A stretch of 64,000 bases of DNA, from the NCBI GenBank assembly GCA_025558095.1, contig JAIVFI010000007.1, forward strand, positions 682,001 through 746,000, written 5' to 3'. The notes under the pieces were generated by a model that did not search any database, was not told where the DNA came from, and worked only from the letters and a program-made list of their open reading frames with translations. Both the position numbers and the translations under genes were made by a program. This document shows, piece by piece, positions 2,926 through 60,424 of the stretch. Each line of letters starts with the position of its first letter. Within the stretch, counting starts at the first letter, position 1. The DNA is from Hyaloraphidium curvatum SAG 235-1 (Eukaryota > Fungi > Monoblepharomycota).

Positions 2926-3095
2926 GCTGCTGCTACACATTGTAGAGTACGATATCGTCGTTTTCGCTGAAGCAAGGTGGACGGGCAAAGGCGAGAAGCG
3001 GACTTGGGAGGAGCATATGAGCAACAACGCTTTGTTCCCCTGGTCGCAGGCGCCCAGAGACAGGTGCGGATGAGGCAGGTGGCGTTCCTGGTGTT
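2921..3095 (+). mobile_element. Small fragment of a LINE AP-endonuclease N-terminus
   Basis: Frame from 2921 reads RELLLHIVEYDIVVFAEARWTGKGE, resembling the RTE-type APE motif DIxxLxExRWxGxG. It is followed by a stop. Confidence 0.55.
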
Positions 3096-3100
3096 TGTTG

Positions 3101-3365
3101 TGTTATTCCTTTTTCCTTAGAGCCGCCCTCCTAGGTTATTGTCTAGCCAAGATCCACCCATCCATCCAAGTCCAACATCAAACTCCAGGACCAACTCCAA
3201 CTCGATCCGACGGCTCCAAACACATCCATCCATCCCCAGCAACACTCCCCCATTTGGAGGCGAGTGGATCGAGTGGAGTCCCCCACCGCGTGCTCCTCCA
3301 CGCCCCGGGAGTGAGTTCCTCGGGCTGCCTAGGCCAGGCTCCCTGATGTCACATCGCACGTCACA
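3101..3365 (-). repeat. Putative 3' LTR of the Ty1/copia element
   Basis: On the minus strand a purine tract GGGGGAGG is immediately followed by TGTGAC (from 3365), and the segment ends ..ATAACA (3101). It lies downstream of the copia RNase H. The left edge could be 3092-3101. Confidence 0.65.
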
Positions 3366-4033: not shown

Positions 4034-7000
4034 AAAATGAGTGCATGGGGCAAGAAGCAAGCTTCTTGCTGCACAGTGCCTTTTGACAAGCCGAAAATTG
4101 TATTCAAGCCCAACATACTACAAAGCCATCAACTCCTCGTAGAACTCTCGGTGCCGTGCCTCGGTGTGCGTCCAAATCTCCTCCAATCGAGCCGTCTCGT
4201 CCACCACGTACTCCGGGCGGGAAGGGGCTACGTAGTGCTGTGATGGTGGCAGCATCCATGGGTCAACAATGGGTGCAGTCAAAACAAAGTCATCCAACGT
4301 CGTGAATCGTGAGAGCGCGGTGTACATGCGCTGGATCTGTGATCCTTTTGCTGACGGATTGTGGATCAATCTTCAAATCCAGCACCACCCCAGTCAGTGT
4401 TTGCCCTTGGGAAAAGTGCACAGTCATGGCATCGCATGGAGTGAGCTTGATCTGCTTCCTGGTCACTCCGATGTCCTTCTTTCGGTCCCCCGGCATCTTC
4501 AACTGCACCATTTTGGATGCTGTTTCTGCTGATAGGGGGATATGGTTCGGTGGCAACCCTGCCAATTTGAACGGTCGCAATGGGTCCACGACCTCCACAA
4601 TGACGTAGTCAGGAACAGGCACGTTCCGAACGTCTTGCCCAGGGTACCGAGAGTCAAAGGACCACTGCTCGGGAGTCAGGGGGTTCTTCCAGATGATGCG
4701 TCGAAGGATCACCACTGAACCATTGCAAGCCCCCACAGAAGTGGCCACATTGGCACGCAGGAAATACCGGTGCCCAATCACCAAAGGCAAAACACCCAAG
4801 AGGTAGTCCAGTTGAGCATCCAACACTGCAAGAAGGCGGAGCTCTTCCACGGGAGTAAAAGCCTTGTGGCCTTCGTAGGGCTTGTCCATTGCTTTGACCA
4901 GGAACACAGTCAAGCCGTGCCGTGCAGCAAATTCAAACACTCCGTCCATGGCAAACGCCTCCTTGGCAAGGTTGGTGTAGGTGAGCACACTGAGGTCACG
5001 GTAATGTTCATCCGACACGCGAATCAGTCTTCCTTCTCGCGGATGAGAAGCAGGGTATCTTGCAAGCCCAAGTGCTCGGCCATTCACGAGGTTGATTTGG
5101 TGGTCAGTCACGTTATTATTTCTCTTGGCTCCCGGTTGTGGGACAGTGCGCATGGCTTCCAGAAGGCTCGTGAGTCTGGGATCCTGTGACCGGCGATTCT
5201 GCTGCAGAATTACGCATTCTTCGAAAAAGTTCACCCAAAGAAGACGGCCCTGAACCAGGGCGAGTGATTTTGCTTGCTTTGCAGGGCCTGCACTGGCCAA
5301 TGAGACGGCCCCCACAGGTGGTAGCTGGTAAAAGTCGCCGCAAGCCTTGATGTGGGTGCCTCCAAACATGGGCATCTCGGTGACGTCGATGCCAGGGTAA
5401 TCAGCGGCCCTGATCTTCTTGAAGGCATAGTCCAGTATGCTGAGGAGCAATTGACCAACCATTCCCATCTCATCCAAGACGAAGAACCAGCAATCTTGAA
5501 GCTCTTCCCTCAGCTTGTGGATGTTGCGGTCCGCACACGCCTTGTAGTGCTCCTTCTGGCCGGGCTTGCCATCACCTCCAACACTGGCAATCCGCTTCTC
5601 TACGCCTTCCCGGATGTCTGGGTCCTCGACAACGCATACAGGAAGATACTCAGGCACCCCGTCCTCCGGAAGGTTGCATGCCTCATCAATCTCAATGTCC
5701 TCATAATCCGGGTTGTTTTTCTTCAACCACCGCAGAAATGCAAGCACTTTCTGCTTCCTGATTCGCATGGTTCGTACGAATGATGGATCATCACGGGCTT
5801 TACCACTTCCTAGAAGAACAACCACAATTTCCCCAGCAAGGTCTTCCAGTGCATGGGGCAGCTTCTTCGCCACGCCATTGTTGTCCCCTGGTACAATCAC
5901 AAAACTCCCTCGGAGGGCAACATGCTCTCCTTTGTGTCCCTGAGGTTCAGTGAGGTGCACAATGGTCATTCTCGACCTAACAGCAGCGCATACAATCTTC
6001 TCGCAGTACGTGAGGTCGGCAAACTGCTTGGGCAGAGGTCCAGTCCAGTTTCCGTTTGCCAAAGCCACGGCCGGAGTTTTCTTTTTGTACCCGTGGTGGC
6101 AATCACCGCACAGGCGAACAACGCGCACCCCGCCGGGAGTTGTATGAATACCCTCTTTTTGCAGTACCATGTCATCCGCGAAAAACTCGGCGCGCAACTC
6201 GGGGTTATCCGCGACGGTTGGGTGAAGCAAAAGGTCGGCAGGCGCCGTGAAGAGTCCGCTTTTTTCCACGTCCACGTAGTTGACGGTGGTGGAATGACGC
6301 TTGAAGCACAGACGCGCACACAACCCGCAGACTTCCTGCTCCATGGCTTCCTCACTGACTGCATTCAACCAGGCTTCCATGCACTTCATTCGTTCCGCAT
6401 TGTTTTCTGGAGGACAAGCAAACCCGTGTGGAACGTTGCAGGGGTCGACACGGACGCTGGCACACAGATCCCGAACGGTCTTGACGAACCGAGCGCGGGC
6501 AAAGCCCTTGGTAGTTCAGTAGGTGGGATCGACAAGGGGGTCCACCGAGGAGGCTGCCGAATCTGCCGAGCGCGGCCTGTGAGATCACTACCATGAAGCG
6601 AAGCCGCCTGCCACGAACTGTTGCCACTTGCTGACGCGGAAGTGCCGCGGCCGGGCGCAAAAGGGACGGGCTCCGTCCGGCCGGCCGTGTCGCGCTCGAG
6701 ATTTGTGCCAGATGAACCTAAGAAGAGAAATAAAACCAACGGTCGAAGCGGGACCGAACGTGCGGAGGCAAACCTGCAATCGGGATGTCAATGTCCATAG
6801 GATCCACACCGCGTGTGCCCCCGGCCCTCGCGCTTTCGTTTCCGCAACAATCGCGATCTGCGGGACGGAAAGCAAAATGAGGCCGGAAGGCACGCGCAAA
6901 CAGACAACGCACCCAGGATCGGGTCAACGGTCACCGGACTTGCCGCTCCCGCTACCCGAACACGCTTCTTGGTGGATCCTGCAAGGCACAGCAATCATGA

Positions 7001-8207: not shown

Positions 8208-11126
8208 CTACAACCTTGCAACGCCTGCAAAGGAAGCAAGACCTGCCTCCTGTCTGGCTACAACACGAGCAGCATAGTACATCCCATGCGCATATGCAGC
8301 AGCAACCTTGTTTGCATCATGGGCAATGTATGACGTGAGGGAGAGCCAAATGATGGCAAGCCATGCATGATGCCGGACTGAGAAACACGCCAGTGCCTCG
8401 GATGGCCAGTCAGCAAGACCATCCTTGATGGTGGCATCTCCAGCTGCAGAAACAGGCAACCCGTACTGGACCGCAGAGTTTAGGGCATCGTATCCCGAAA
8501 GTGCATAGAGCACCTTGGCTTGGTCGTACTCAGGTGGGCCATAGATCGAAGTCTCCCCGAAGTAACCCCTTGGGTCAATAAGTGCAAGGTTCCTGCCGTC
8601 CTGGGACACGAGAACGTTGGAAAAATTGACGTCTCCATGGATCAGAGTGTAACCGGCATCGCGGGAGCCCGATCTCCAAGCAAGCACCGAATGACAGGCC
8701 GCTGCCACGGCGGCCACATCCCCGCCAAAGGGCAACGGTACGCCGTTCACGCTGCGGATGCCAAAGTGCCGCCAAATGGTCTCCACCGAGGCACAGCGGG
8801 ATATGACCTTGTCGAGCGCCTCGATGCGCAGGTCCCGGGCGGCTTGCTCGGGCGTGGGCTGCGACGGCGCCGGCACAGCGTGAAGCGGAGCAAGCAGGCC
8901 CAGCACGCGGCGAACGAGGTCGGCGGTACGCCTTGCACAGGGATCCCCATCCAGCCAGACTGCGACCGGGATGCCGTCGATGGCCTCCATGGTAAATGAG
9001 GCTGCAGCATCGTCGACATGCAGGATCCGAGGTGCGCGTATGTCCAGCTCCTTCACGGCGTCGTACCAGGCGAGCTCGCGTGCCTGCAGAGCCCGAGCAG
9101 GGTCCGTAAGCGCGGTCTTGCGCACTCCCGAGTCGCCGACACGTTCAACGCGGTTGAACGGTCGGCTGACCATGTCGTCGGCGCCGCCACGGGCGGCACC
9201 GGCTGCCTTTATGGCCGCGGCGTACTTTGCGGCGTCCCCAACATCGAGCAGACCGGGGAGAGCGACGGTCTCAAATGCACCAAAGTTGTCGACAAACACG
9301 TCGGCCACATCCTCGCCGTCCGTCCAGTGGCGGAGCCCGCGGAAACCGTGCACGAGGTACAGGCCGACAACGTTCCCGCCTCGGCCGTCGGGCAGCTTGT
9401 CCAGGCGCCCATCGCGAGCGAGGTAGCGGCACTGATCTCCGTGCACAAACACGGTCGTGTGCCGCTGTCCGAGGCACGTACGCAGAGCATCGGCTGAAGG
9501 AGCCTCGGGCACGATGTCGCCCCATGCAATCAGCAGGTTGGATCCCCAATCCTTGCGCCCCAGGGTGTGCGCCACCGTGGCGGCAGTGCCGTCAATGCGG
9601 TCGTACGTACGGATCTCGATGCTCCGGATGCCTCCGGCGGATGCATCGTTCTTTCGGGCCGCAAGGTAGGCGTCGGCGTAGAATTGCGTCAGATCGGCGT
9701 GAGCGGGTCGTACGATGATGATGGCTCGTTCGGTGACGGTGCCGTAAGCGTCCAGGATGTGGTCGAGCAACGGGCGTCCATCCAGCGGAACCAGGGGTTT
9801 AGGCACATCCTTCGTCATGGGATAGAGACGCGTGGCAGCCCCGCTTGCAACCAGCACGACTGCATCAACGGCGCGGGAGCTGCTCTTTCCAAGCAAGCCT
9901 GCGGGGTGCCTTCGCTGAAAGGTCGACGACGAGACCCCCTTTGCCTGGGCGACCGCGACACCGAGAACGTCCAGGAACGCCATCAATGCGGCCGAGGAGA
10001 CGGTAGGGGCCATGTTGATGTTGTCGATCTCGACGAATCCCTTCTCGCTCATGCAGGCCGAGAAGTCGCAGGCCGATGCCAGCGGCCCTCCCGGCTGCAG
10101 GGTGATGGCGACCTGCAGATTCCCGAAGCCCGCATCGCGTACGTAGCTGGCACATTTCACCAGCTCCTCCGTGGTGCCAGAGTTGGACACATATACGAGA
10201 AGATCGTCCGGAGCGATGCCGCCAAAGTCGCCGTGGAAGAGGTTGGGCACGCTCGCAGTCTGCGCTCGCAGCCCCATCGAAGTCCAGGTAGAAACCGACT
10301 TGGCAGCCACCAAGCCGCACTTGCCGATGCCGAGCAGATAGGTGTGGCCGCGACACGAGGCCACGAGAGGCACGAGCCACCGCAGGGCTGATCCACCCTG
10401 CTCGGGCTGCAGAACCTCGCGCAAAGCGCTTGTGTAGAGGCGCGCCGACCGCTCGACGAGCATTTTGATGGCAGGAGCCTTGCCGACGGCGAAGCGATCG
10501 AGGAGCTCCAGCCGAAGGTCGGCGAGAGACTTGACCGTCTTGACTGAATGATCAGCGGCACAAGCGGCCACGCAGCCGGCCGGGCACGACTCGACTGCGA
10601 TGCACGGCAAACCGGCCGCACGGGCAGCGGCGATACCCCGCGGCGTGTCTTCGACGGCGACGGCGGCGCGGGCTGCGGGGTCCAGGGCCAGGGCCCGCAC
10701 GAACCCCTCGGGAGAGGGCTTGGAGGCTTTGCACACATCGCGCGTGACGAATCGCTCGACGGCACGCAGCTCGGGGTGCGCGGCCTTGAGCGTGGCCAGC
10801 GACGCCGAGCTCGAGTGCGTCACGATGCACGTCTCGATGCCGGCCGCGGTGAGGGATCGCAGCAGTTCTCCCGCGCCTGGGGCCAGCGGCGGCGGCGAGC
10901 GGCGGAGGGCGGCGGCGTATGCGCGCGCCTTGGCGTCGCGCAGGCCCGGCAGGCCGCGGACCGACGGCGGCTCGACGGGCTCCGTCGCGTGCTGCATGGC
11001 GCAGTACTCTTCGGCGGTCAGCGCCGGGCGCCCGAACGACGCCAGCGCCTCATTGTACGCGGCGTGGTGCAGCTGCTCGCTCGCGATCAGCGTGCCGTCC
11101 AGGTCGAACAGCACGTAGTCGACCAT
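8208..11126 (-). CDS. Intronless four-domain sugar-phosphate/nucleotide-sugar enzyme: HAD phosphatase + KdsD/KpsF-like SIS isomerase + NTP transferase + APH-like kinase (~972 aa)
   Basis: HAD: FDLDGTL, KPSP, VEDTPRG. SIS: GIGKCG, HGDFG, SNSGTTEE, APTVSS, HPAGLLG. NT: ASGAATRLYPMTKDVPKPL, WGD. Kinase: HGDVNFSNV, IDPRGYFG, YDQAK. Likely ATG at 11126. Confidence 0.9.
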   Translation of the reverse strand: MVDYVLFDLDGTLIASEQLHHAAYNEALASFGRPALTAEEYCAMQHATEPVEPPSVRGLPGLRDAKARAYAAALRRSPPPLAPGAGELLRSLTAAGIETCIVTHSSSASLATLKAAHPELRAVERFVTRDVCKASKPSPEGFVRALALDPAARAAVAVEDTPRGIAAARAAGLPCIAVESCPAGCVAACAADHSVKTVKSLADLRLELLDRFAVGKAPAIKMLVERSARLYTSALREVLQPEQGGSALRWLVPLVASCRGHTYLLGIGKCGLVAAKSVSTWTSMGLRAQTASVPNLFHGDFGGIAPDDLLVYVSNSGTTEELVKCASYVRDAGFGNLQVAITLQPGGPLASACDFSACMSEKGFVEIDNINMAPTVSSAALMAFLDVLGVAVAQAKGVSSSTFQRRHPAGLLGKSSSRAVDAVVLVASGAATRLYPMTKDVPKPLVPLDGRPLLDHILDAYGTVTERAIIIVRPAHADLTQFYADAYLAARKNDASAGGIRSIEIRTYDRIDGTAATVAHTLGRKDWGSNLLIAWGDIVPEAPSADALRTCLGQRHTTVFVHGDQCRYLARDGRLDKLPDGRGGNVVGLYLVHGFRGLRHWTDGEDVADVFVDNFGAFETVALPGLLDVGDAAKYAAAIKAAGAARGGADDMVSRPFNRVERVGDSGVRKTALTDPARALQARELAWYDAVKELDIRAPRILHVDDAAASFTMEAIDGIPVAVWLDGDPCARRTADLVRRVLGLLAPLHAVPAPSQPTPEQAARDLRIEALDKVISRCASVETIWRHFGIRSVNGVPLPFGGDVAAVAAACHSVLAWRSGSRDAGYTLIHGDVNFSNVLVSQDGRNLALIDPRGYFGETSIYGPPEYDQAKVLYALSGYDALNSAVQYGLPVSAAGDATIKDGLADWPSEALACFSVRHHAWLAIIWLSLTSYIAHDANKVAAAYAHGMYYAARVVARQEAGLASFAGVARL

Positions 11127-11184
11127 TGGTCGCGGTGACTCGATGGGGATCGCGGTGACGAGTAGGTCCTTAGTACCGTTTACA

Positions 11185-11530
11185 GAATGAACGGAAGCCT
11201 CTGAGAAACCAACAACTAAGCCAACCACAATACCTCCCGGCATCCTGCTCGTACTACGGCGATTGGTTACGCCGACTCCGGAGCAATGAACCCTACCTCC
11301 ATTTGTTTTGGTTCCTGCTCCCGCCCGCCGGGGTCTTCTCAGTATCACTGATCGCCCGGAGAAACCGAGCCCGCGGATAGATGCCCCGCCCGATCAAAAC
11401 ATCATTGCATAGCTCAGTCGGGATCGGATCGGCCACGACCCTTGCTTTCGAGAGCGAACTCAAGATCGCAAGAGTTGACCGTTGAGCGGGATCGTCACAC
11501 ACACAGGAGTCGTTGGAGGGCCAAAAGACC
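11185..11530 (-). ncRNA. Candidate Fanzor omegaRNA locus / element right end
   Basis: Non-coding stretch directly 3' of the Fanzor stop, with several stems (CGGCG-TAACCAAT-CGCCG at 11257-11274; CGGAGTC 11280-11274 can pair with GGCTTCCG 11199-11192). Its position is inferred from known Fanzor architecture. Confidence 0.4.
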
Positions 11531-50484: not shown

Positions 50485-50549
50485 CGTGTCGGGTGTGCGT
50501 TTGTATGTAATGAGGAGCTAGCAATCCCACCGTACACTTAGAAATCCCC

Positions 50550-53500
50550 CTACGCCCCAAGAATCAGCTCCTCATCTACATTCAAACCAAAAGCGACCGG
50601 CGCGGGGGCCGGAGCGTTGACAGCGGCGGCTTCGGTGCACAGCTGAAGCCAGTGTTGGAGTTGGGCCGCGACGCCAAGAGCCCAGGCCACCGCGATCCGT
50701 TCGCGGAAGCGCCGCACAAAACGAGAGTAAAGGCCATCGAGGTCCACGGGCTGCCCATCGCGGCCGACGATCCCGGGATACTGGATGCGCCCCATCTCCG
50801 AGGAGAAGCGCGAGAAAGTGGCAGAGACAGCGCTGTACGAATCAAAAGCAAGCACGATCAGAGGGTAGAAGTTGGCGTTGAAGACGAAACGGGAGTAGTC
50901 CTTCCTGGCGGCCTCGACCCGCCGTTCGACTGCGTGGCCCGGGACCGAGAAGACCAGGCCCGTGTGCAAATGGGCCATAGAGGTGAGGGTCTTGATCTCG
51001 AGCAACCACCGTTTCCGGGTTTCGCGGTGCGTGATGAGAATGTCGCCAAGGCGGCCAGCATCCGCAGGCGTGGGCGGGGTGACAGTCTCGTAGCCATGCG
51101 CAAGGAGGTTTGGCGGCATGGGGTGCACGCGGAGGAGCGGGATGGAGCGAAGCGCCGCGCGGATGGCCGCGCAAATGTCGTCGTGACCAGGACTGAAGAG
51201 ATCCCGGCCATAGCAGCCCGAGAACGCGTGCTCCCCCGTCAGCGCCATGGCCGATCGCTTGCAGCCCCGCCGGCAGGGCAAGGAAAGACCAGGGTAGTCG
51301 GCCTCGTGCAGGAGCGGGAGGCAAAGCCGGAAGCGTACAAGTAAGCGGAAAAAGTTGTTGCGAATGTGGTTGGCAAGCAGCGCGGGAGAGGCAGTCAGGA
51401 AAGCCGACAGGCCGTCCTGCGCCTGGACGAGCCGCTTGCGGCGCTCCAGACCAGCGGAAGTGTCGGGTTGCAAGGCAATCAGAGCCGCGAGGCGGCGCTG
51501 GTCCTCGAGACGCGTAAGGTCGCTCTGCAGGCCGTGCCAGACCGGCTGAGCGAAGAAACTGGCGTCCGCAGGGAGCGTACGGCGGGCGGGCGCGGCGCCC
51601 ACCGGTTGCCCAGCACGCGCAGCCTCGGCGTACGCTGCGGCCGTGTCATCCTCGACACGCTCAAAGGCGGGGCGGAGGGCCTCGATGACGGGAACCAGTT
51701 CCCGCACGTGCTCCACGCCCACACCCCGGGCCGAGGTTCGAAGACCAAGCATGGCGTCCAAGGGGCCCGCCGTGAGGTTGAGTGAAGACAGGTAAGCCGC
51801 CGAGGCCACCTTCTCCGATGACAGAAGCCCCATCCCCGAGTAGTGCAGACCCAAGAATACCTGCTCCCGCACAGTCCGACCCTCCACCGACAGCGGATCC
51901 AGATCCTCGGCCCGATCTCCCAGCAAGCGCAAGAAGGTGGTGAAAAGCGCGTTGTCAAGACGTCGAGCAAAGGGTTGGGTAACCGAGGGGGGGAGAATGC
52001 GGAGCCAAAACGAGAAGAGCTGGGTCACACAGAGACGGAGGAGGGAGTACAGGCCCTGGAGGGAGGGGATGTCGGCCGGCATGGCGTAGCCGAGCGCGGC
52101 GCGCTCGATGTCATCGAGAAGAGCGGCAATGGAGTCGATCTTGGCCGCGAGGAACGACTCCACATAGGCAGGGGTGCCGACCGGGGCACCTACCACCTTG
52201 AGGCCGCACGAGCGAGCGAAGTCAGGCGAGCCCGGGGCCGACGCCGTGGCATGCACCTCGGGGTCGGCCTCGTGAGGCGGGAAGCCAGCGACGCGGATGT
52301 TGTGGGCCGCACCGGCCGCGCGCACCCACTCCAGCACGGCCGGGTTCGTCGAGAGCGAAAGCAGGTAGCTCTTGTCCGGGCGGTGGGTCATGCCGAGGGA
52401 AGAAAGGCCGTCACGCACCTCTCCCAGGACGGCCATGACCGAGTCCAGCGGCCCGACCACGGTGAGGTCGTCGAGGTACCCAAGGATGAGGCAGTCGGGG
52501 TGCCCAGAGCGGATGGGCCGCAGCATGCGGCTCATGGCGCAGGAGAAGATGGCAGACGCCAGCGGGTCGCCCTGGATGTTGCCCTCGTACATGGTGATCC
52601 GGAAAAGGAGCTCCGCCGAGCGCCGGTCGCGGAAGTAGGCGTGGGAAGGGCGCGAGTAAACGAGGTTGTAGTACGGGATAAGCTGAGGCACCTGGCGGAC
52701 CACCTCGCGCGCGAAGAGGCGGCGCAGCGTATTGAAGGCGTTCCTAGAGTCGACCTTCATGACGACGTGGTCGGGGAAGGCCGCCAGCCACGCGTTCACC
52801 GCGTGGGCGGTCGCCTCCGCGCCCCCGTCCACCCCGTGACCCAGGTCCTCCTGCTGTTGGAGCTTCCTCAGAAGAGCCTTGTGCCGCACGGCCAGGTACG
52901 AGCCCGCGAGCCGCGTGATGCCCTCCATAATGCCAATCGGCCGGAGCCCCCCCTCCGGCTTGAGCAGAGGGACGAGGATTTGATCCGTGAGGAGCGGCCG
53001 GAGCATGGGGGTGTCGAGTCGGCCAGTGCACACGCCATGCACCATGGCCGCCAGCGGGCGGAGCTTCCGCCGCGTCGCGTCGTTCTCGCAGTTGTGCACG
53101 ATGAAAAGTTTGGCCATGCTGAAACCCGACATGCCGGCCCCCACGCCGTCCTTCTTCCGGCGCAACCGGGCCCAGATGTCCTCCAGGAAAGCCGCGTCCG
53201 TGTAGGCAGGGCAGGGCGCGGGCGCGTTGGGGGGCAGAGACAGCCGACACAGCGGCTCTCCCTCCCGCGGCCCCGGGTACAGCTCCTCCAGTTCCGCCTG
53301 AAGCGTGGGCGTGAAGCCAGCCGGAACGGCCTCCCCCGAGAGGGCCGCGGACGCAGCACCAGGAGCGCCCTTCAAGGCGGCAAGCACGATGGACTTGAAG
53401 AGCTGGTAGTTGAGCGGCCGCAGCCCGTCCCGCCGCGCGCCCCGGTTGACCTGACGGGCGGCGAAGTAGTTCTGCTCGTACATGTAGTCCCCCGACATGA

Positions 53501-54461
53501 CGTAGCCGCCAAACGCAAGGTAGGCGGTGAGAGTGCGGTGCAGGTCGGTTTCCGGCGCCGCCGGGTCCTCGTAGGCCCGTTGGAAAGACTCGCTGGCCCG
53601 GAAGGCGAGCGCGCTCCAGGTGGTGGTCCGGTAGCGGTGCTTCAGCGGCTCCGGCGGCGGCGCCCCCGCGCCCCCGCCCGGCGGCGAATCAGGCCCGGGA
53701 CCCCCGGGTGGACCACCGTCGCCCGGGTCGCCCGGATCACCGCCGTTGCCGTGCCCGCCAGCCGCGGCGTTGCCGCCCGGCGCGCCGTCGCCGCCTGGGG
53801 GATCACCGCCGTCCGGGGCGGCACGCGCCGCCGCCGCCGCCGCCGCCAGCGCCGCCCGTTGCGCCTGGCCGTCCTGCGGGGCGTCGGCCGCAACCCGGGC
53901 GGCCGCAAGGGCCGCCATCAGCGCGGGCGCGGGTGGCGAAGCACGGGGAGATGCCGACGATGCCGCTGGTGACGCCGGTCCCTCCGCGCGTCCCGTGGCA
54001 GCCGCCCGCTCGGCACGCACGCGGTCGAGGAACTCGACGAGATCGGGTGGAAGCGAAGCTAAAGAGACGCCAAGTGGCGGGTTAGCTGCGTCCGGGTTGC
54101 ACGAGGTGTGCTGTCCAGAAACACCGGCACCAGAGGCGTTTGCGGCGTAGGGACGCCGGCAACCCCCGCACCGCGCTAGCCCCATGGCGCGCAACGCATC
54201 GGCAGACAGGCGCTGCATCGCCAACCAGTGCTCCGGGCTCCGTGTGACCCGAAGATGACCGTCCCGTTTGTTTTTGTTTGGAGTTGGCTGGAAGCGGCAA
54301 CCATCAACCGGGCACTCATGGAGGCCGGGTTCAGCAGGCGCCTCCGCCATCGGCACATCGCCGTCGATGCAAGATTGGTGATGATGAGATAGAGCTCCGA
54401 TGTTGGCGAAAGCTGCCGCGCAGCGGTGGCAGCTGTAAGGCAGGAGCGGCGTGCGGCTCAT
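50550..54461 (-). CDS. Retrotransposon pol: N-terminal zinc fingers, reverse transcriptase, CCHC and RLE endonuclease
   Basis: CHRC..HHHQSC; LKPEGGLRPIGI, KVDSRNAFN, GNIQGDPLAS, YLDD, VGAPVG, GMGL; CRRGC..HAFSGC..HD; RLGDILI..LEIKT. Confidence 0.93.
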   Translation of the reverse strand: MSRTPLLPYSCHRCAAAFANIGALSHHHQSCIDGDVPMAEAPAEPGLHECPVDGCRFQPTPNKNKRDGHLRVTRSPEHWLAMQRLSADALRAMGLARCGGCRRPYAANASGAGVSGQHTSCNPDAANPPLGVSLASLPPDLVEFLDRVRAERAAATGRAEGPASPAASSASPRASPPAPALMAALAAARVAADAPQDGQAQRAALAAAAAAARAAPDGGDPPGGDGAPGGNAAAGGHGNGGDPGDPGDGGPPGGPGPDSPPGGGAGAPPPEPLKHRYRTTTWSALAFRASESFQRAYEDPAAPETDLHRTLTAYLAFGGYVMSGDYMYEQNYFAARQVNRGARRDGLRPLNYQLFKSIVLAALKGAPGAASAALSGEAVPAGFTPTLQAELEELYPGPREGEPLCRLSLPPNAPAPCPAYTDAAFLEDIWARLRRKKDGVGAGMSGFSMAKLFIVHNCENDATRRKLRPLAAMVHGVCTGRLDTPMLRPLLTDQILVPLLKPEGGLRPIGIMEGITRLAGSYLAVRHKALLRKLQQQEDLGHGVDGGAEATAHAVNAWLAAFPDHVVMKVDSRNAFNTLRRLFAREVVRQVPQLIPYYNLVYSRPSHAYFRDRRSAELLFRITMYEGNIQGDPLASAIFSCAMSRMLRPIRSGHPDCLILGYLDDLTVVGPLDSVMAVLGEVRDGLSSLGMTHRPDKSYLLSLSTNPAVLEWVRAAGAAHNIRVAGFPPHEADPEVHATASAPGSPDFARSCGLKVVGAPVGTPAYVESFLAAKIDSIAALLDDIERAALGYAMPADIPSLQGLYSLLRLCVTQLFSFWLRILPPSVTQPFARRLDNALFTTFLRLLGDRAEDLDPLSVEGRTVREQVFLGLHYSGMGLLSSEKVASAAYLSSLNLTAGPLDAMLGLRTSARGVGVEHVRELVPVIEALRPAFERVEDDTAAAYAEAARAGQPVGAAPARRTLPADASFFAQPVWHGLQSDLTRLEDQRRLAALIALQPDTSAGLERRKRLVQAQDGLSAFLTASPALLANHIRNNFFRLLVRFRLCLPLLHEADYPGLSLPCRRGCKRSAMALTGEHAFSGCYGRDLFSPGHDDICAAIRAALRSIPLLRVHPMPPNLLAHGYETVTPPTPADAGRLGDILITHRETRKRWLLEIKTLTSMAHLHTGLVFSVPGHAVERRVEAARKDYSRFVFNANFYPLIVLAFDSYSAVSATFSRFSSEMGRIQYPGIVGRDGQPVDLDGLYSRFVRRFRERIAVAWALGVAAQLQHWLQLCTEAAAVNAPAPAPVAFGLNVDEELILGA

Positions 54462-55309
54462 GGCGAATACGGTGGCGGCGGCGATGCCGGTGTCCCGCCG
54501 CCAGGATCAGCTACCGCGGACGGTGCCTTGTCCGACGAGATCTCCCAATCGTCGAGCGCATGTGTCCGCATCCAAACCTCCTGTGACTCGGTCAGGTCGC
54601 CCCCCGCCCTGTGCCAGGCCGCAAGCGCCGACCACGCGTCACCGATAGCATCACGGCCGCCGTCATCGAGGAGCTCGGAACCTGGCCATTCGAGGTGCGC
54701 CGGCGAACCGGGCTCCGTGTGAGCATACCAAGGAGGCAAGGTGCGCGTCGGAGTGGATACTTCCGAGGAGCTCTGCCCCCCCCCGGCCGTTGGTGCCGGC
54801 GGCGTGCCGGGGGTTGTGCGGGGCGGCGCAGGCGGCAGCTGCAAGCTCGGCACGGCGGTTGCAGCTGGGGTTTCCCACGGAGGATGGCCTGGGTGCGCCG
54901 AGAGCATGGAAGCGGCCGAAGCCGGGGCATCAGCGATCAAGATCTGCGATGACGAGGAGGGAGATACTTCCGAGCATGCCGCCCCTTTCCCCCCCGCTGG
55001 TGCCGGCAAGCGGGAGGAGCCGCGGGGCGGCGTGGGCAGAGTGTGACCCTCGGCCAAGCTAGGCACGGCATTTGGCCGAGGGGCCCCGGGGGACGCGGGG
55101 TCAATGTCGGAAGTCTCCCCTGCTGCCGCGAACGGCCTCGGAACTCGGTGAGACGTTGTAGATAGTGGTAGTTGGCGTACCGGTGAAGACTGCAAAACAG
55201 CAAAAGATGGAGGGGCTGACCGCGCCCGGGAGGTATCCGGACGAGCTCGGCGCCGAGAAGAGCAGCCCACTACTCGGCGTTGCCACTTGCTTGGTGGTGT
55301 TTTAGGCAT
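54458..55309 (-). CDS. Middle ORF of the retrotransposon (283 aa, Pro/Ala/Ser-rich)
   Basis: Exactly bridges ORF1 and pol: ATGCCTAA overlap at 55309-55302 and ATGA overlap at 54461-54458. Confidence 0.55.
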   Translation of the reverse strand: MPKTPPSKWQRRVVGCSSRRRARPDTSRARSAPPSFAVLQSSPVRQLPLSTTSHRVPRPFAAAGETSDIDPASPGAPRPNAVPSLAEGHTLPTPPRGSSRLPAPAGGKGAACSEVSPSSSSQILIADAPASAASMLSAHPGHPPWETPAATAVPSLQLPPAPPRTTPGTPPAPTAGGGQSSSEVSTPTRTLPPWYAHTEPGSPAHLEWPGSELLDDGGRDAIGDAWSALAAWHRAGGDLTESQEVWMRTHALDDWEISSDKAPSAVADPGGGTPASPPPPYSP

Positions 55310-57467
55310 TCAAGGACGGTGAGCCAGGAGCCGGCAGCAGGGATCCGGTTGACGTGGAGGCGGCCTTGGCCTGGGGGAAGCCGAGCTTGCGAACGGCCGC
55401 CTTGGCCTTCCGTTCCGCTTTGGCGGATTTGACGTCGATTTGCTGATACGGCTTGGCAACCTTGTCCGGGTTTGTCCCTGCCACATCCTCCACGGGACGG
55501 CCCTTGCCTGCGTGCTTGGGGCCTGGGGCCATCGTAGGATCACCAACCGCGGATGCCCCAGCGGCCTCATCGGCCGTGTGCATGTCTTCGCTTGGTGCCT
55601 CCGAGTTCGAACCATCGCCCTCAGCAGAGGCTTCGGAGGCGGCGTCGTTTCCACCCGAGGCCTCAGAGCCGGTGGCATCCTCCTCCATCGCAGATTCCGT
55701 GCCCTCCATTGCGGGAGCAGCAAGCTCCAGATCCTCCAGCGCGGTATTGGCTGCAACCTGCTGTGCAGCACTGCTGATGGCGTTCTCAGCGGCCAGCTGG
55801 TCGGCACCACCCATGTCCTCGTCCCCATCCTTGTCAGCCGGCTCCAAAATGGGAAGACCATGGAAATCCATCTTTTCGGCGGCGTCAGACTCCCCCCAAT
55901 CGACCGAAGCACCGGCACCACCACCACCGAGTGCCGAAAACCTGTTGTGGGACGCCTTGGCCACTGGCTGGGCAAGAGCTGGGGGCGCAGAGCCTGCGCG
56001 CTTGCCGGACGGCCCAGCTGTAAGCCACTCGTTGGCCGCAGGGGCGGTGGGGGAAGCCAGATGCGGAGGAACGACCTCTTCCCTCAGGGGGGGCAGCCGC
56101 GGGGTCGTGGCGGGCTCCACCGTTGGGGGAGAGAGCCGTACGTTGGCCGGGTTGTGAATGCAGTCCGCCTCGTGCGCACGGCGTGCTTGCGGGCTGGCAA
56201 AGGCGCCGGGATTCATGCGGTTGAGACCGTCTGGGCAGTAAGCACAGTTGGTGCACGTGGCATCGTCACCGACGTGGCCGCCCGTGCGCTTGCAGTGGCC
56301 GCACTGTCCGTTGCTACTGTCATAGCGGACAGCTGGGCGAAGGAGCTTGTGCTGGAGGAGTGTCCCCCACGAGTCAAGGAAGCAGTACGAGGGTGGGCCA
56401 ATGCGTGCTGCGCGGTCAAAGAAGGCATCAACCCCGCACTGCGAGACGTCGAAAGTGACCCGCCAGAAGGCGTTGCTGTCGGTGCCCGAGATGGGAGCCG
56501 CTTCAATGACTTGGCAAGGGGCCCCATAGTGGTTCTGGAAAGTCGCGTAGAGGCGGGCCCACCAGTCCGGGCACTCGTGCACCGAACCAGGGACGATCAT
56601 GGGCCCGATCTTGAGCTCGGCGTGCGTGTCCTTGAAGACAGGGTGGATGCGCAGCCGACGCGTCGGGCCGTTTGGGAACTTGACCTCCAGCACCCCCTGC
56701 TCCACCAAGGCGTTGATAGCGTCTGCCCCGTCGACAGCACCAACAACACAGAAGAGGTCCAGTCGCGAGTAACGCGGGTTGTAGCCTCGCGTCTCGGTCG
56801 TGAAGACGGTGGTGGGGAAGGTCGCCTTCGCCACGGCTTCGGCGACGACGCGCCGTCGGTCCTTTGGCACACCGTTGAGGTCGATGAGGCAGTGGGGGAC
56901 AGGCCCAATGAAGGCCGGCGTGTAGCCCCGACCGTTGGCGTGCGGTTGCACCCGATCGATGAGCTTGGCGTAGTTGGTGGGCGCCGAGAAAGGCATGGCA
57001 GAAGCCAGATGCTCCGCCATCGCGCCGTCCGTGACACGAACAATCGGGCGGTCGGGCGAGGTGCGCGACGTTGCTGCGGCGAAAGAGCGAGACCCCAGGC
57101 GCGTGGCGGGGGCGGTTGCTTTCGGGAGACGATTCTGCGGAGCCGGCTCCTCCCGGGCGCCGCCGTTGGCGGACGCGGGGCGGATTTCAGTGGTCGATTC
57201 AGCAGCGTCCTCCTTAGAACCTGTCAGCTGAGCCGTAGCACCAGCGGGGGCCGGCGCGGGCTCCTCTGCCGCGCCAGGGAGGCGAGGAGAGGCAGCGACG
57301 CCGGGAGCGTGGGAAGAGTGGACGGGATTCGCAAGCGCCTCCGAGGAGGCCGCGGCGAGCGCAGGGGAGACCTTGCCATCAGGCAGGACCACGGGAGCGG
57401 CCGCATCATTGGGCCCCTGCCCTGTGTCAGGGGGGTCCATTCCGGGTAAAATTGACGGCGGCGGCAT
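55302..57467 (-). CDS. Retrotransposon ORF1 (gag-like nucleic-acid-binding protein)
   Basis: 721-aa ORF inside the TSDs; disordered ends, globular core, CGHCKRTGGHVGDDATC knuckle and CAYC..HEADC finger. Confidence 0.8.
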   Translation of the reverse strand: MPPPSILPGMDPPDTGQGPNDAAAPVVLPDGKVSPALAAASSEALANPVHSSHAPGVAASPRLPGAAEEPAPAPAGATAQLTGSKEDAAESTTEIRPASANGGAREEPAPQNRLPKATAPATRLGSRSFAAATSRTSPDRPIVRVTDGAMAEHLASAMPFSAPTNYAKLIDRVQPHANGRGYTPAFIGPVPHCLIDLNGVPKDRRRVVAEAVAKATFPTTVFTTETRGYNPRYSRLDLFCVVGAVDGADAINALVEQGVLEVKFPNGPTRRLRIHPVFKDTHAELKIGPMIVPGSVHECPDWWARLYATFQNHYGAPCQVIEAAPISGTDSNAFWRVTFDVSQCGVDAFFDRAARIGPPSYCFLDSWGTLLQHKLLRPAVRYDSSNGQCGHCKRTGGHVGDDATCTNCAYCPDGLNRMNPGAFASPQARRAHEADCIHNPANVRLSPPTVEPATTPRLPPLREEVVPPHLASPTAPAANEWLTAGPSGKRAGSAPPALAQPVAKASHNRFSALGGGGAGASVDWGESDAAEKMDFHGLPILEPADKDGDEDMGGADQLAAENAISSAAQQVAANTALEDLELAAPAMEGTESAMEEDATGSEASGGNDAASEASAEGDGSNSEAPSEDMHTADEAAGASAVGDPTMAPGPKHAGKGRPVEDVAGTNPDKVAKPYQQIDVKSAKAERKAKAAVRKLGFPQAKAASTSTGSLLPAPGSPSLNA

Positions 57468-57489
57468 TGGGTGTGCGTTTCGGGTGCGT

Positions 57490-58070
57490 CTCAGAAGCCA
57501 CGAGGTCGACGAGGTGGTGGCCGGATGCTCTGCCGCGGAGGCTGCGGGCGCCCGATGCGCGCGGGCCCGGGCCGGAGCCGGCCGCGTCGGCCAAGCTCGA
57601 CCCGCCCGCGCTGCTCCGCGCCCTGCCGCCGCCGCTGAGGCTGCTGATCGCCGCGCAGCTCTGGCTGGCCGTGCACTACATCGGCTTGCCCGACGCCGTT
57701 CTGCCCCCCTCTACACGGTGACCATGATCCTCAGCGTCGCCTACGTCGCCTTCTGGGACCTGCTCGCCGTCGCCGCCTCCAACGGGCAGGCAAACGCCAC
57801 CGCATCCTTGCTCCTCCAGGCGAGCCGGGAATGCCGGTCGCTCCTCGCTTTTTCGGCGCCGGATCCGGCAATGGCGCAGCACCCGGAGCTGCTGCGGGCG
57901 TTTGCGGAGGGGGGGGGGCGGGGGGGAGGGCGAGGTGGCTGTGGTTCGAGCCGGACTACGGGTCCGCGAGGGCCGTGGCGATCGCGGCGTTCACGGTCGC
58001 GGTGGGGTTGTGGTCGGTGTTCAGGTCGAGCGGGGTTTACCTGACGCCGGAGCTGGCGTGCTGGGGTTGA
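57490..58070 (+). pseudogene. Fragment of a membrane-protein gene, frameshifted in homopolymer runs, with no in-frame start
   Basis: Hydrophobic segments spread over three frames (LLIAAQLWLAVHY; ILSVAYVAFWDLL; AIAAFTVAVGLW), with switches at C and G runs. These may be sequencing errors. Confidence 0.35.
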
Positions 58071-58230
58071 GAACATGGACGGGGCATGCAGAGCATCCCG
58101 CCGGCTATATCCCCCGGTGGTTAGGCCAGAGGCGGCCTAACTTCTGTGGAATGGAGCCCAGTTACGAATGAATGAAGATTGCTTTGAAAACATCGTTATC
58201 AGAAGATTCAGATCGGGATACAAACGTAAG

Positions 58231-60021
58231 CTACCGCTCGGCCCTTTTTGAGTTACCTTCTCCTGCCATCGCTTTTGCTGCGGCGAAGTACTTCCTCATC
58301 GACGTTTGTACAGCTGCGCCCGAGTTTCGAAGCAGGGCGTCCACGTTCTTAGCAACCACGTTGAGGCGCGCCAGCACCTTGTCTTTGTCGAGCGGCGGCT
58401 CTGGGGTCCATTCCAGAGCTTCCAACACCTGAATCATCAGGTTCTGAATCCTCTTGGAGGAATCGACCACGAACTGCTGGGCACCTTCGACTTCCAGCTT
58501 CTCCATCTTGTCCCGGAAGCGGATGACTCGCATACCCGAGGCCAGCAGGTGGTGCGTCTTTTTCTCATCTTGCTCGCGAACTTCGTCGGTGCCGTGACGA
58601 TACGTTCCATCGAACTCAATGGCGACATGGCGTCCCTCGACTTCAATCACGGCATCGGGGGAGATCCGGCCCGAAACAAAGTCTTGTGATTTTGGTGCTG
58701 CAACAGTCCGCTTCATGGCTTCCACGACGACATCCGTGGCCAAGTCGGGCTCTTCCGGCCACCGACTGCCGAGTAGGCAGTACATGGTCGCAACAACGGC
58801 ATGGATCTCTGGCACCGAACGACCAACGAGGAGTTTGCCACAGGTTCGCTCATCTCCAGTGCAGCAGGACATCCGGCTGCCGTGTTCGCAGGGCAGATGC
58901 GTTTCCCTGTGCTTGGTAAGATCACTGCTTCTGGACATTGCAACATGGCATTGGTTACCATCCGAGCCAATGATGCCACAGATGTAGGGCCTCTCGCCCG
59001 TGTGGATCCGGATGTGCGACCTCAAGGCGCTGGGGTCGGAGAACGCGCTCTCGCAAGATGTTCCGTCAGGAAGATCGCAGATGCAAACGAAGGGTTTCTC
59101 GCCGGTGTGGATGCGCTTGTGGTTCGTGAGCGAGCTCTTCTGCACCCATCCTTTTCCACAAACACTGCCATCCGGCAAAGGATAGTCGCAAAAGAACTTC
59201 TTCACCCCAAGATGAAAAGCTACGTGTTTGTCTCTGTTACCGGAGTAAGCAAAGGCCTTCTCACAGATGTCGCAAAGGTATCTCAGGTTCTTGGTGTGAA
59301 CACTGTCTCGGTGGCGGCTACGAGCGCTCATGTCAGCGAAGGCGGCAGTGCACTTGGTCCCATCCTCGAGCTCGAAATCGCAAACGAATGGTTTTTCCCC
59401 CGTGTGCGTACGCAGATGGTTCTCTCTCGCCCATTTCGTGGGGAAAGCCCTGATGCAGGGCCCTTCATCATCAAACTTGAAGTTGCACACAAACGTCTTT
59501 TCACCGGTGTGAGTGAGAATGTGTCTGTTCCGTGTGGCGCTTTGCGTAAAGGCCTCCTGGCACGGTGTTCCGTCCTCGAGCTCGAAGCCGCAAATGTGGG
59601 GGCGCTCTCCCGTGTGCGTCAGACGATGCGTGTTTCGGGCTCCGATATCACTAAAAGCTTTAGGGCAATCTGACCCGTCTTTGCGCTTTAGCCCGCACGG
59701 ATACCTGCGCTCCCCCGTGTGCGAAGCCATGTGTCTGTCGCGAGCGCCACTTTGCGTGAACGCCTTCTGGCACTTCGTACCGTCCTTAAGCTCATAATGG
59801 CACACAAAAGGACGTTCCTTGGTGTGTGTTCGGATGTGGCGGACCCGAGACGATGCGTCCGCGAGCACAGCGGGGCACAAGGAGCCGTCGGGGAGTTCGA
59901 AACCGCAAGGGACGCCGCCCGGGTCCCCCGGGGCTCGGTTCGGCCGTCTCCCGCGCCCAGAGGGCCCCGTGGGCACCACTTTCACCAAGCCATCGTGCTG
60001 AGCGACCGATGAGTCGCTCAT
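58231..60021 (-). CDS. Intronless 10x C2H2 zinc-finger array fused to a C-terminal Vsr/DUF559-like PD-(D/E)xK-type endonuclease
   Basis: Ten fingers (58897-59907), mostly with HTGE(K/R)-type linkers; CEHG..CC..C motif; SPDAVI..VAIEFDGTYRHG..QDEKKTHHLLASGMRVIRFR (~58500-58670). Confidence 0.88.
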   Translation of the reverse strand: MSDSSVAQHDGLVKVVPTGPSGRGRRPNRAPGDPGGVPCGFELPDGSLCPAVLADASSRVRHIRTHTKERPFVCHYELKDGTKCQKAFTQSGARDRHMASHTGERRYPCGLKRKDGSDCPKAFSDIGARNTHRLTHTGERPHICGFELEDGTPCQEAFTQSATRNRHILTHTGEKTFVCNFKFDDEGPCIRAFPTKWARENHLRTHTGEKPFVCDFELEDGTKCTAAFADMSARSRHRDSVHTKNLRYLCDICEKAFAYSGNRDKHVAFHLGVKKFFCDYPLPDGSVCGKGWVQKSSLTNHKRIHTGEKPFVCICDLPDGTSCESAFSDPSALRSHIRIHTGERPYICGIIGSDGNQCHVAMSRSSDLTKHRETHLPCEHGSRMSCCTGDERTCGKLLVGRSVPEIHAVVATMYCLLGSRWPEEPDLATDVVVEAMKRTVAAPKSQDFVSGRISPDAVIEVEGRHVAIEFDGTYRHGTDEVREQDEKKTHHLLASGMRVIRFRDKMEKLEVEGAQQFVVDSSKRIQNLMIQVLEALEWTPEPPLDKDKVLARLNVVAKNVDALLRNSGAAVQTSMRKYFAAAKAMAGEGNSKRAER

Positions 60022-60088
60022 CCTCTGTGGAGGTCGCCAAAAGACAAGTTTCGGGCGCTCTCAACTTGGATCATGGCTGGTGCCCAAG

Positions 60089-60424
60089 TTGCTAGTAATG
60101 AGGAGCTAGCAATCCCACCGTAAAATCGCCCCTACGCCCCAAGAATCAGCTCCTCATCTACATTCAAACCAAAAGCGACCGGCGCGGGGGCCGGAGCATT
60201 GACAGCGGCGGCTTCGGTGCACAGCTGAAGCCAGTGTTGGAGTTGGGCCGCGACGCCAAGAGCCCAGGCCACCGCGATCCGTTCGCGGAAGCGCCGCACA
60301 AAACGAGAGTAAAGGCCATCGAGGTCCACGGGCTGCCCATCGCGGCCGACGATCCCGGGGTACTGGATGCGCCCCATCTCCGAGGAGAAGCGCGAGAAAG
60401 TGTCAGAGCGGTCTCTACGGGCTT
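60089..60424 (-). mobile_element. 5'-truncated copy (~310 bp) of the CRE-like retrotransposon
   Basis: 60095-60408 is nearly identical to 50507-50826 (last ~90 codons plus 3' UTR). Candidate 8-bp TSD TGCCCAAG at 60081-60088 and 60425-60432. Confidence 0.9.

Follow-up and report, generated by a model that had tools for sequence, protein, structure and literature searches.

A ten-finger C2H2 array joined to a Vsr/DUF559-type nuclease domain in a gene of Hyaloraphidium curvatum

We analysed a stretch of 64,000 nucleotides from the fungus Hyaloraphidium curvatum SAG 235-1 (GenBank assembly GCA_025558095.1, contig JAIVFI010000007.1, positions 682,001 to 746,000), referred to here as the window and used for all positions given below, and found that a gene at 58231–60021 on the minus strand encodes ten C2H2 zinc fingers followed by a C-terminal domain that is, by sequence family, a Vsr/DUF559/EDxHD-type PD-(D/E)xK nuclease. 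On balance, we favour the reading that the product is a chimeric, sequence-directed DNA endonuclease whose most likely role lies in genome conflict rather than in housekeeping. An earlier note, made from the sequence alone, had likened this layout to that of engineered zinc-finger nucleases (ZFNs), and the N-terminal C2H2 array and the C-terminal nuclease are both borne out, by profile, by conservation and by fold.

Results

The gene and its product

The gene is an intact, intronless open reading frame (ORF), as the earlier note had described it: it begins with ATG, runs for 596 codons and contains no internal stop. A genome search (31.9 Mb assembly, 55 contigs) showed the locus to be single copy, with no intron or intein context. 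Its GC content of 54–62% is lower than the 65–74% of its flanks, a contrast that had also been pointed out before, and its GC content at third codon positions (GC3) is 0.67; the five neighbouring host genes that were measured have values of 0.84–0.95 in four cases and of 0.72 in one, a HAD-SIS gene. Residues 1–38 of the protein are rich in Gly, Pro and Arg, and the remainder is organized as follows, with the probable transcript given last.

58231–60021, minus strand: zinc-finger nuclease ORF, ATG start, 596 aa, no internal stop
58897–59907, minus strand: ten-finger C2H2 array, residues 39–375 (Pfam and pattern scan)
58840–58890, minus strand: CHCC zinc knuckle (C378-x-H380-x6-C387-x6-C394), joining the array to the nuclease
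58279–58893, minus strand: nuclease domain as modelled, residues 377–581, with N-terminal helices that include GRSxxE, a PD-(D/E)xK alpha/beta core and a C-terminal helical extension
58558–58656, minus strand: catalytic core, D456 ... E469-x-D471-G ... H476 ... D485-x-x-K488 (codons checked)
57956–60065, minus strand: probable unspliced transcript with a 44-nt 5' leader lacking ATG, the ORF and a 3' untranslated region (UTR) of ~275 nt (contig of run X1)

Sequence evidence for the nuclease domain

Beyond the knuckle, the protein continues with GRSVPE and then with PD(456)A...IE(469)FD(471)GTYRH(476)...D(485)EKK(488)...RVIR(501)FR(503); the two motifs singled out in the earlier note, CEHG...C and PD..IEFDGxYxH..D..K..G.RVIRF, are thus in place at residues 378–394 and 455–503, respectively. 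A profile built from the paralogous domains of the same genome gave 437 matches at E ≤ 1e-3 in a search of 1.84 billion representative proteins. We also used the profile of an alignment of 80 sequences seeded on the window domain (A3) in a HMMER search of the sequences in the Protein Data Bank (PDB), where it matched the catalytic domain of I-Bth0305I (PDB code 3r3p), the founding member of the EDxHD homing endonucleases (PMC3239194), with an E-value of 1.1e-7, and the DUF559 structure 3hrl with an E-value of 0.1. Two homologues, P0005 (28.8 bits) and P0007 (23.0 bits), score above the Pfam cut-off for DUF559 (20.6 bits). It is through this 80-sequence profile and these homologues that significant matches to the Vsr/DUF559/EDxHD clade were obtained, and the earlier assignment of the C-terminus to that clade is upheld by the profile, by the conservation of the catalytic residues and by the fold. 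The last 209 residues alone, searched with phmmer against the PDB, gave only chance matches (for example, to sigma factors and Fab chains), and a word-indexed homologue search with the nuclease region returned only the window protein itself. In PHROGs and PADLOC, nothing was found for the window domain, and its relatives gave only weak homing-endonuclease matches.

In the HMMER alignment to 3r3p, D456, D471, H476 and D485 are aligned with D196, N208, H213 and D222 of I-Bth0305I, which have been equated with D51, H64, H69 and D97 of Vsr (PMC3239194), and each of the four Vsr catalytic positions therefore has an equivalent in the window protein. Across the 80 sequences, D471, G472, H476, D485 and R501 are invariant, and D456, E469, K488 and R503 are at least 90% conserved; this conservation of the active site extends to distant bacterial relatives. 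The eukaryote-type subfamily has invariant residues of its own, namely C378, H380, C387, S402 and E405, the three knuckle residues among them being invariant in 19 eukaryote-type relatives. The knuckle has the look of a CEHG..CxxCGG repeat unit that has degenerated, and one paralogue, L005, has full CEHG repeats where the window protein has the knuckle.

Predicted fold

The AlphaFold2 model obtained with the 80-sequence alignment has a mean predicted local distance difference test score (pLDDT) of 92.0 and a predicted template modelling score (pTM) of 0.87, and shows an alpha/beta core of the restriction-endonuclease-like kind; it supersedes a first model from five sequences (pLDDT 63), whose Foldseek matches were suggestive only. 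The earlier note had made its reading depend on a PD-(D/E)xK/Vsr-type fold at the C-terminus, and this is the type of fold that was predicted. In an exhaustive structural comparison, the neighbours were nearly all PD-(D/E)xK nucleases, including VC1899, Bax1, SfsA and RAP domains. Vsr (1cw0) was matched with a Z-score of 5.9 over 114 aligned residues, almost all of Vsr, and 3r3p and 3hrl with Z-scores of 4.8 and 4.7, while the top Foldseek match was the restriction enzyme EcoT38I (E 1e-3). Structures of R2 proteins appeared as weak fold matches. The nearest models in the ESM Atlas were of bacterial proteins with DUF4379 treble-clef repeats and DUF559, some also with NUMOD, at template modelling scores of 0.55–0.59 over 138–162 residues. 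A fold of this kind supports the family assignment but does not by itself establish it.

The finger array

A regular-expression scan gave ten finger units, with helices identical to those listed in the earlier note, and the array matches Pfam zf-H2C2_2 (3.8e-37) and zf-C2H2 (2.5e-18) far beyond chance. The residues at helix positions −1 to 6 are, from finger 1 to finger 10, DASSRVR, QSGARDR, DIGARNT, QSATRNR, TKWAREN, DMSARSR, YSGNRDK, QKSSLTN, DPSALRS and RSSDLTK. The linkers, nine in all, are TGE(K/R)P-like in seven cases, in line with the earlier description of them as mostly TGEKP-like, the divergent pair being HTKNLRYLC and HLGVKKFFC. The repeated C..C-x12-H-x3-5-H pattern, together with the Pfam matches and these linkers, identifies the region as a C2H2 array. 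Its fingers depart from the canonical form, in which the knuckle is C-x2-4-C and helix position 4 is hydrophobic (Leu): the knuckle spacing is C-x9-C in eight fingers and C-x7-C in one, leaving a single C-x2-C, and fingers 1–7 have Arg at helix position 4, the usual site of the core Leu. The paralogues L002, L003 and L004 have canonical C-x4-C fingers, with Leu in nearly all of them.

Exchangeable zinc arrays on a common nuclease

The window protein shares with its relatives a module consisting of the CHCC knuckle, GRSxxE, the nuclease and C-terminal helices, which stands behind differing repeat arrays. Four kinds of array were distinguished.

C2H2 arrays: the window gene, its paralogues, P0005 and P0006
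EsV-1-7 arrays: P0007, P0009–P0013 and P0016 (Pfam PF19114, up to 5.6e-83)
CEHG..CxxCGG arrays: P0008, P0015 and paralogue L005
DUF4379 arrays: bacterial relatives, in which only the nuclease core matches

The bacterial DUF4379 relatives match approximately positions 65–165 of the 214 profile positions and not the N-terminal part with the CHCC knuckle and GRSxxE. One nuclease behind four kinds of zinc array is what would be expected if the array were an exchangeable targeting part. The C2H2 forms number only a handful among the 1.84 billion representative proteins, and their distribution is rare and patchy. In a quick maximum-likelihood tree of modest support, the eukaryote-type sequences cluster together, with a Shimodaira–Hasegawa-like approximate likelihood ratio (SH-aLRT) value of 92, and within this cluster the C2H2-bearing nucleases, six in number, fall into a single group (SH-aLRT 82; none of 500 label shuffles was as low). 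P0005 and P0006 are the two closest C2H2 relatives outside the genome itself, and P0006 has a C-x9-C finger too; the nearest relative of the window protein is P0005, which comes from another data set and is 40% identical to it. Because the C2H2 nucleases group together and the nearest relative, found elsewhere, has diverged to this extent, we conclude that the C2H2 fusion has persisted.

Three further observations concern the relatives and their arrays. The cysteine-rich EsV-1-7 proteins P0007, P0009–P0013 and P0016, found in metagenomes and an assembly (loci L007 and L008), end in the CHCC knuckle and a DUF559-type nuclease, and because of this ending EsV-1-7 repeats may be nucleic-acid targeting modules. 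P0151, on a 2.1-kb contig of Joint Genome Institute (JGI) metagenome 3300059473, falls in the same protein cluster as P0006; behind it comes a fragment of 57 aa that weakly matches N6/N4 DNA-methyltransferases, which hints at a possible pairing of the restriction-modification kind. Finally, a massively duplicated family of DUF4379-only proteins of bacterial origin has been described in Mucoromycotina (bioRxiv 10.1101/2021.12.02.471044); zinc-repeat proteins of this sort have therefore entered early-diverging fungi before.

Paralogues in the genome

The genome-wide search for paralogues proposed in the earlier note yielded five nuclease-family loci besides the window gene; three of the six loci are intact and three are broken.

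Window gene: intact
L002 (contig C15): intact, 681 aa, 11 C-x4-C fingers
L005 (C28): intact, CEHG repeats, E469 replaced by F
L003 (C17, ~233 kb): damaged, with TGA in place of a conserved Ser codon within the nuclease domain; at least 15 fingers in the locus, which was searched only with the piece 3' of its stop
L004 (C10, ~660 kb): damaged, with a frame switch inside one finger of the array, either a frameshift or a very short intron
L014 (C8, ~527 kb): damaged, with a frameshift between two catalytic strands of the nuclease core

The window nuclease is 33–38% identical to its paralogues, and L002, L003 and L004 are 62–67% identical to one another. Similarity among these three at the DNA level, approximately 66%, ends at the ends of the ORFs, and their flanks are not common. 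The GC3 values of the family members, 0.67–0.77, are lower than in all of the measured host genes but HAD-SIS and lie inside the 0.60–0.80 span of the transposon genes of the window. The family as a whole shows a birth-and-death pattern without sign of recent mobility. Within the genome, the window array is matched best by the arrays of the other loci that carry the nuclease, which fits a single fusion followed by divergence.

At L014, positions 240–1896 (plus strand) of the locus encode at least 12 near-identical C-x4-C fingers. Tail to tail with the nuclease of L014 lies a 412-aa tyrosine-recombinase-like ORF (1903–3141 of the locus, minus strand), whose match to Pfam Phage_integrase (1.3e-3) is below the cut-off; five diverged relatives of this ORF were found elsewhere in the genome, none of them near another nuclease locus.

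Transcription

The gene is probably transcribed, and without splicing. A public sequencing run, X1, contains 98% of the sampled words of the gene, and one of its contigs, of 2133 nt, is collinear without gaps with 57956–60065 and carries a sequencing adapter at the 60065 end. The contigs of X1 break within intergenic stretches. Its depths are unequal for adjacent single-copy genes (212, 130 and ~70), and ORF1 of a neighbouring retrotransposon, with at least 20 genomic copies, is no deeper than the nuclease gene; for these two reasons X1 is probably RNA rather than DNA. Within the probable 3' UTR, approximately 90 nt past the stop codon, there is a hairpin with a perfect 7-bp stem (TTAGGCC ... 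GGCCTAA, 58120–58141).

Neighbouring retrotransposon and other genes of the window

The nuclease gene lies between two sequences of the same element.

50547–57454, minus strand: full-length, very young, multi-copy retrotransposon without long terminal repeats (non-LTR), downstream of the gene, with ORF1, a middle ORF and a reverse transcriptase (RT) ORF (RVT_1 match in an ORF of 1303 aa)
60129–60408, minus strand: 280-nt, 5'-truncated 3' fragment of the same retrotransposon, 99% identical, 64 nt upstream of the probable transcript start

The earlier note had placed the gene between two copies of a young retrotransposon; the element is indeed the same on both sides, but only one copy is full length, the other being the 280-nt fragment. 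Of this retrotransposon, the genome contains 64 or more 3' ends and 20 or more copies of the 5' part, 99–100% identical, and the 5' ends of the copies vary within 57440–57454. The family appears to have expanded very recently.

Two ways of tying the nuclease to this element were considered and rejected. The 280-nt direct repeats, 9.6 kb apart, might have marked the gene as part of the retrotransposon; the repeat, however, is one of the 3' ends just counted, and 57468–60128 is single copy. Descent of the nuclease from the endonuclease of the adjacent retrotransposon found no support in hhalign, which gave a probability of 0.4% against the C-terminal third of the RT ORF. The combination that characterizes an R2/CRE-type retrotransposon endonuclease, an RT in the same polypeptide and homology to the restriction-like endonuclease, was absent; a Pfam scan found no RT domain in the nuclease ORF.

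Two other ORFs of the window were recorded. The HAD-SIS gene (8208–11348, minus strand) encodes a single chain of 1046 aa that combines a HAD phosphatase, a SIS isomerase, a nucleotidyl-transferase and an APH-type kinase domain; from these domains it resembles a fused four-step pathway to sugar nucleotides of the nucleoside diphosphate (NDP)-heptose type, which would be unusual in a eukaryote. A Helitron-like ORF (DUF6570 and PIF1 helicase) with a GC3 of 0.60 lies at 4290–6389 (minus strand).

Discussion

Comparison with known systems

The closest characterized counterpart of the window protein is I-Bth0305I (PMC3239194), the best match by sequence among solved structures, with which it shares a Vsr-like core, equivalent active-site positions and a modular plan in which an N-terminal DNA-binding part is followed by a C-terminal nuclease. 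I-Bth0305I, however, has NUMOD and helix-turn-helix modules and is phage-borne, within a group I intron, whereas the window protein is of the eukaryote type, free-standing and single copy, and has additional elements, namely the CHCC knuckle, the GRSxxE helix and the helical extension at the C-terminus. The nearest predicted structures are those of uncharacterized bacterial and phage proteins annotated as ‘zinc-ribbon domain-containing’ (DUF4379 with DUF559), which have the core ExDGxYWH..D..K and likewise place a zinc array before the nuclease; their zinc module, in contrast, is a treble clef and not C2H2. Escherichia coli Vsr has the same fold and equivalent catalytic Asp, His and Asp residues, but reads its T:G mismatch through its own helix and Trp residues, without a separate DNA-binding array (PMC3239194). 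A 2012 survey of PD-(D/E)xK nucleases listed the VSR/DUF559/DUF2726 group as prokaryotic (PMC3424549).

Engineered ZFNs are built on the same plan: C2H2 fingers joined by TGEKP-type linkers form the N-terminal part, and the cleavage domain behind them, FokI, belongs to the PD-(D/E)xK superfamily. The window protein differs from them in having a cleavage domain of the Vsr/DUF559 type rather than FokI, and a longer array of ten fingers with C-x9-C knuckles. Natural eukaryotic C2H2 fingers that guide a PD-(D/E)xK nuclease to a specific site are found in the proteins of R2-type retrotransposons (N-terminal C2H2/Myb, RT and C-terminal restriction-like endonuclease), but the window protein has no reverse transcriptase. 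Among fungal site-specific nucleases, yeast HO likewise relies on a zinc-finger DNA-binding region attached to it, although the two proteins are unrelated: the nuclease of HO is of the LAGLIDADG type and derives from an intein, and its zinc fingers are C-terminal and not of the C2H2 type.

The EsV-1-7 proteins of brown algae and phaeoviruses (PF19114; IMMEDIATE UPRIGHT) have a repeat other than C2H2, and in several proteins, P0007, P0009 and P0012 among them, from metagenomes and one National Center for Biotechnology Information (NCBI) assembly, this repeat type precedes the knuckle-plus-nuclease module. In a brown-alga preprint, EsV-1-7 proteins are viewed as possible zinc-finger regulators; the IMM-type members are described there as carrying the repeats together with a unique N-terminal domain, and a nuclease domain goes unmentioned. 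Our literature search, which covered natural zinc-finger nucleases, C2H2 fingers linked to Vsr-like domains, EsV-1-7 repeats linked to endonucleases, and DUF4379, turned up no account of a fusion of C2H2 fingers with a Vsr-type nuclease. We therefore place the protein in a class already known, that of modular site-specific nucleases whose catalytic domain is of the EDxHD type, the C2H2 fusion setting it apart.

Proposed mechanism and alternatives

In the mechanism that we propose, the ten-finger array would recognize a long site, and the CHCC knuckle would couple it to the C-terminal Vsr/DUF559/EDxHD-type PD-(D/E)xK domain and position that domain on the DNA. The nuclease domain would then cut the phosphodiester backbone by means of metal ions bound by D456, E469, D471 and D485; H476 would probably serve as the general base. 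We infer that the enzyme is catalytically active and that its substrate is DNA rather than RNA, the cut being either a nick or a double-strand break. Its role would be host defence against transposons or viruses, or else it would be a formerly selfish gene that is now resident; a part of either sort in genome conflict is hinted at by the birth-and-death paralogues, the low GC3 and the rare, patchy distribution.

A number of observations weigh against this proposal. The window protein alone falls below the Pfam cut-offs, both for DUF559 (16.6 versus 20.6 bits, 0.0074) and for MTES_1575 (18.7 versus 38.2 bits, 0.0019). Every structural Z-score is below 8, in what the tool calls the ‘middling’ range, and the fold evidence consequently backs the sequence evidence rather than standing by itself; a homodimer prediction for the nuclease domain, which in a ZFN-like mode of action would have to dimerize to make a double-strand break, scored 0.00, a result on which the tool returns no verdict either way. 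DNA binding by the array is not assured, because of the C-x9-C knuckles and because seven fingers have Arg in place of the core Leu. The target prediction and genome scan suggested in the earlier note were carried out with a naive recognition code, but the resulting 30-nt degenerate pattern, at up to two mismatches, had no match in the genome; a control pattern likewise had none, and the null result is uninformative in either direction because the fingers are non-canonical. The GC3 contrast comes from few genes, and the value of the host HAD-SIS gene (0.72) lies within the range of the family. That run X1 is RNA is, moreover, the guess of the tool.

Among the other explanations, all of which we consider less likely, the one that survives best is that the protein is a zinc-finger DNA-binding regulator of transcription or chromatin, in which the nuclease fold is non-catalytic and makes, for example, contacts with DNA or protein. 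We regard this as unlikely, even though poly-C2H2 proteins are usually regulators and the brown-alga literature discusses the EsV-1-7 repeat family only as candidate developmental regulators. All of the active-site residues are kept in relatives of only 20–40% identity, bacterial ones included, which would not be expected of a dead domain, and the replacement of E469 by F in L005 shows that losses are visible when they occur.

The earlier note had itself suggested a homing-type selfish gene; its structural part, an array fused to a Vsr/DUF559 nuclease, stands, whereas nothing indicates homing. That the gene is currently mobile, cutting an empty allele and copying itself in, has in its favour that the closest characterized relative is a homing endonuclease, that there are weak matches to phage homing-endonuclease families, that GC3 is low and that the broken paralogue L014 adjoins the tyrosine-recombinase-like ORF. 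The gene, however, is single copy and outside any intron or intein, and no mobile cassette with common flanks was recognized; the similarity of L002, L003 and L004 stops at the ORF boundaries, the paralogues have diverged widely from the window gene, and the recombinase family is not represented near the window locus. We consider current homing improbable.

An equally improbable alternative, in our view, is a Vsr-like repair nickase acting at T:G mismatches that arise by deamination of 5-methylcytosine, with the fingers restricting the sequence context. Vsr is among the best fold matches, with nearly all of its length covered, and its active-site residues are conserved, but the sequence is nearer to DUF559/EDxHD than to Vsr proper and no Pfam Vsr match was reported for the window protein. 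Vsr is also set apart from I-Bth0305I-type enzymes by its long DNA-inserting helix and intercalating Trp (PMC3239194), and a ten-finger array in a birth-and-death family is a poor fit to a general repair enzyme.

An RNA-directed nuclease, parallel to the RAP-domain proteins, whose repeat arrays bring a Vsr-like domain to organellar RNA, is more improbable still: RAP-domain structures (FASTKD4 and a Toxoplasma mitoribosome protein) match the fold with Z-scores of 5.7–5.8, and some C2H2 arrays bind RNA, but the window protein has no match to Pfam RAP, its sequence affinity is with DNA endonucleases, and its first 38 residues are of the Gly/Pro/Arg-rich composition noted above.

Significance

ZFNs are generally viewed as an invention of engineering, and a natural, intact and probably expressed example would matter for that reason: evolution, too, would have come up with the combination of a modular finger array and a cleavage domain. 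For study, it offers a finger scaffold unusual for its C-x9-C knuckles as well as a cleavage domain that is compact and not of the FokI type. It also ties DUF559, the DUF4379 repeat proteins and some EsV-1-7 proteins into one idea, that exchangeable zinc arrays aim a common nuclease, and it raises the possibility of a nuclease-based, sequence-specific genome defence in an early-diverging eukaryote.

A bolder extension of our proposal, which we hold to be doubtful although worth stating, is that eukaryotes and their viruses possess an unrecognized family of naturally programmable nucleases, in which the EDxHD/DUF559 module is carried on interchangeable zinc arrays (C2H2, EsV-1-7 and CEHG, with DUF4379 in bacteria) and the C2H2 members are germline-encoded cutters of transposon or viral DNA. 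If this were true, EsV-1-7 repeats would be nucleic-acid-reading modules, and the C2H2 nucleases would be the cleaving counterpart of KRAB-zinc-finger repression.

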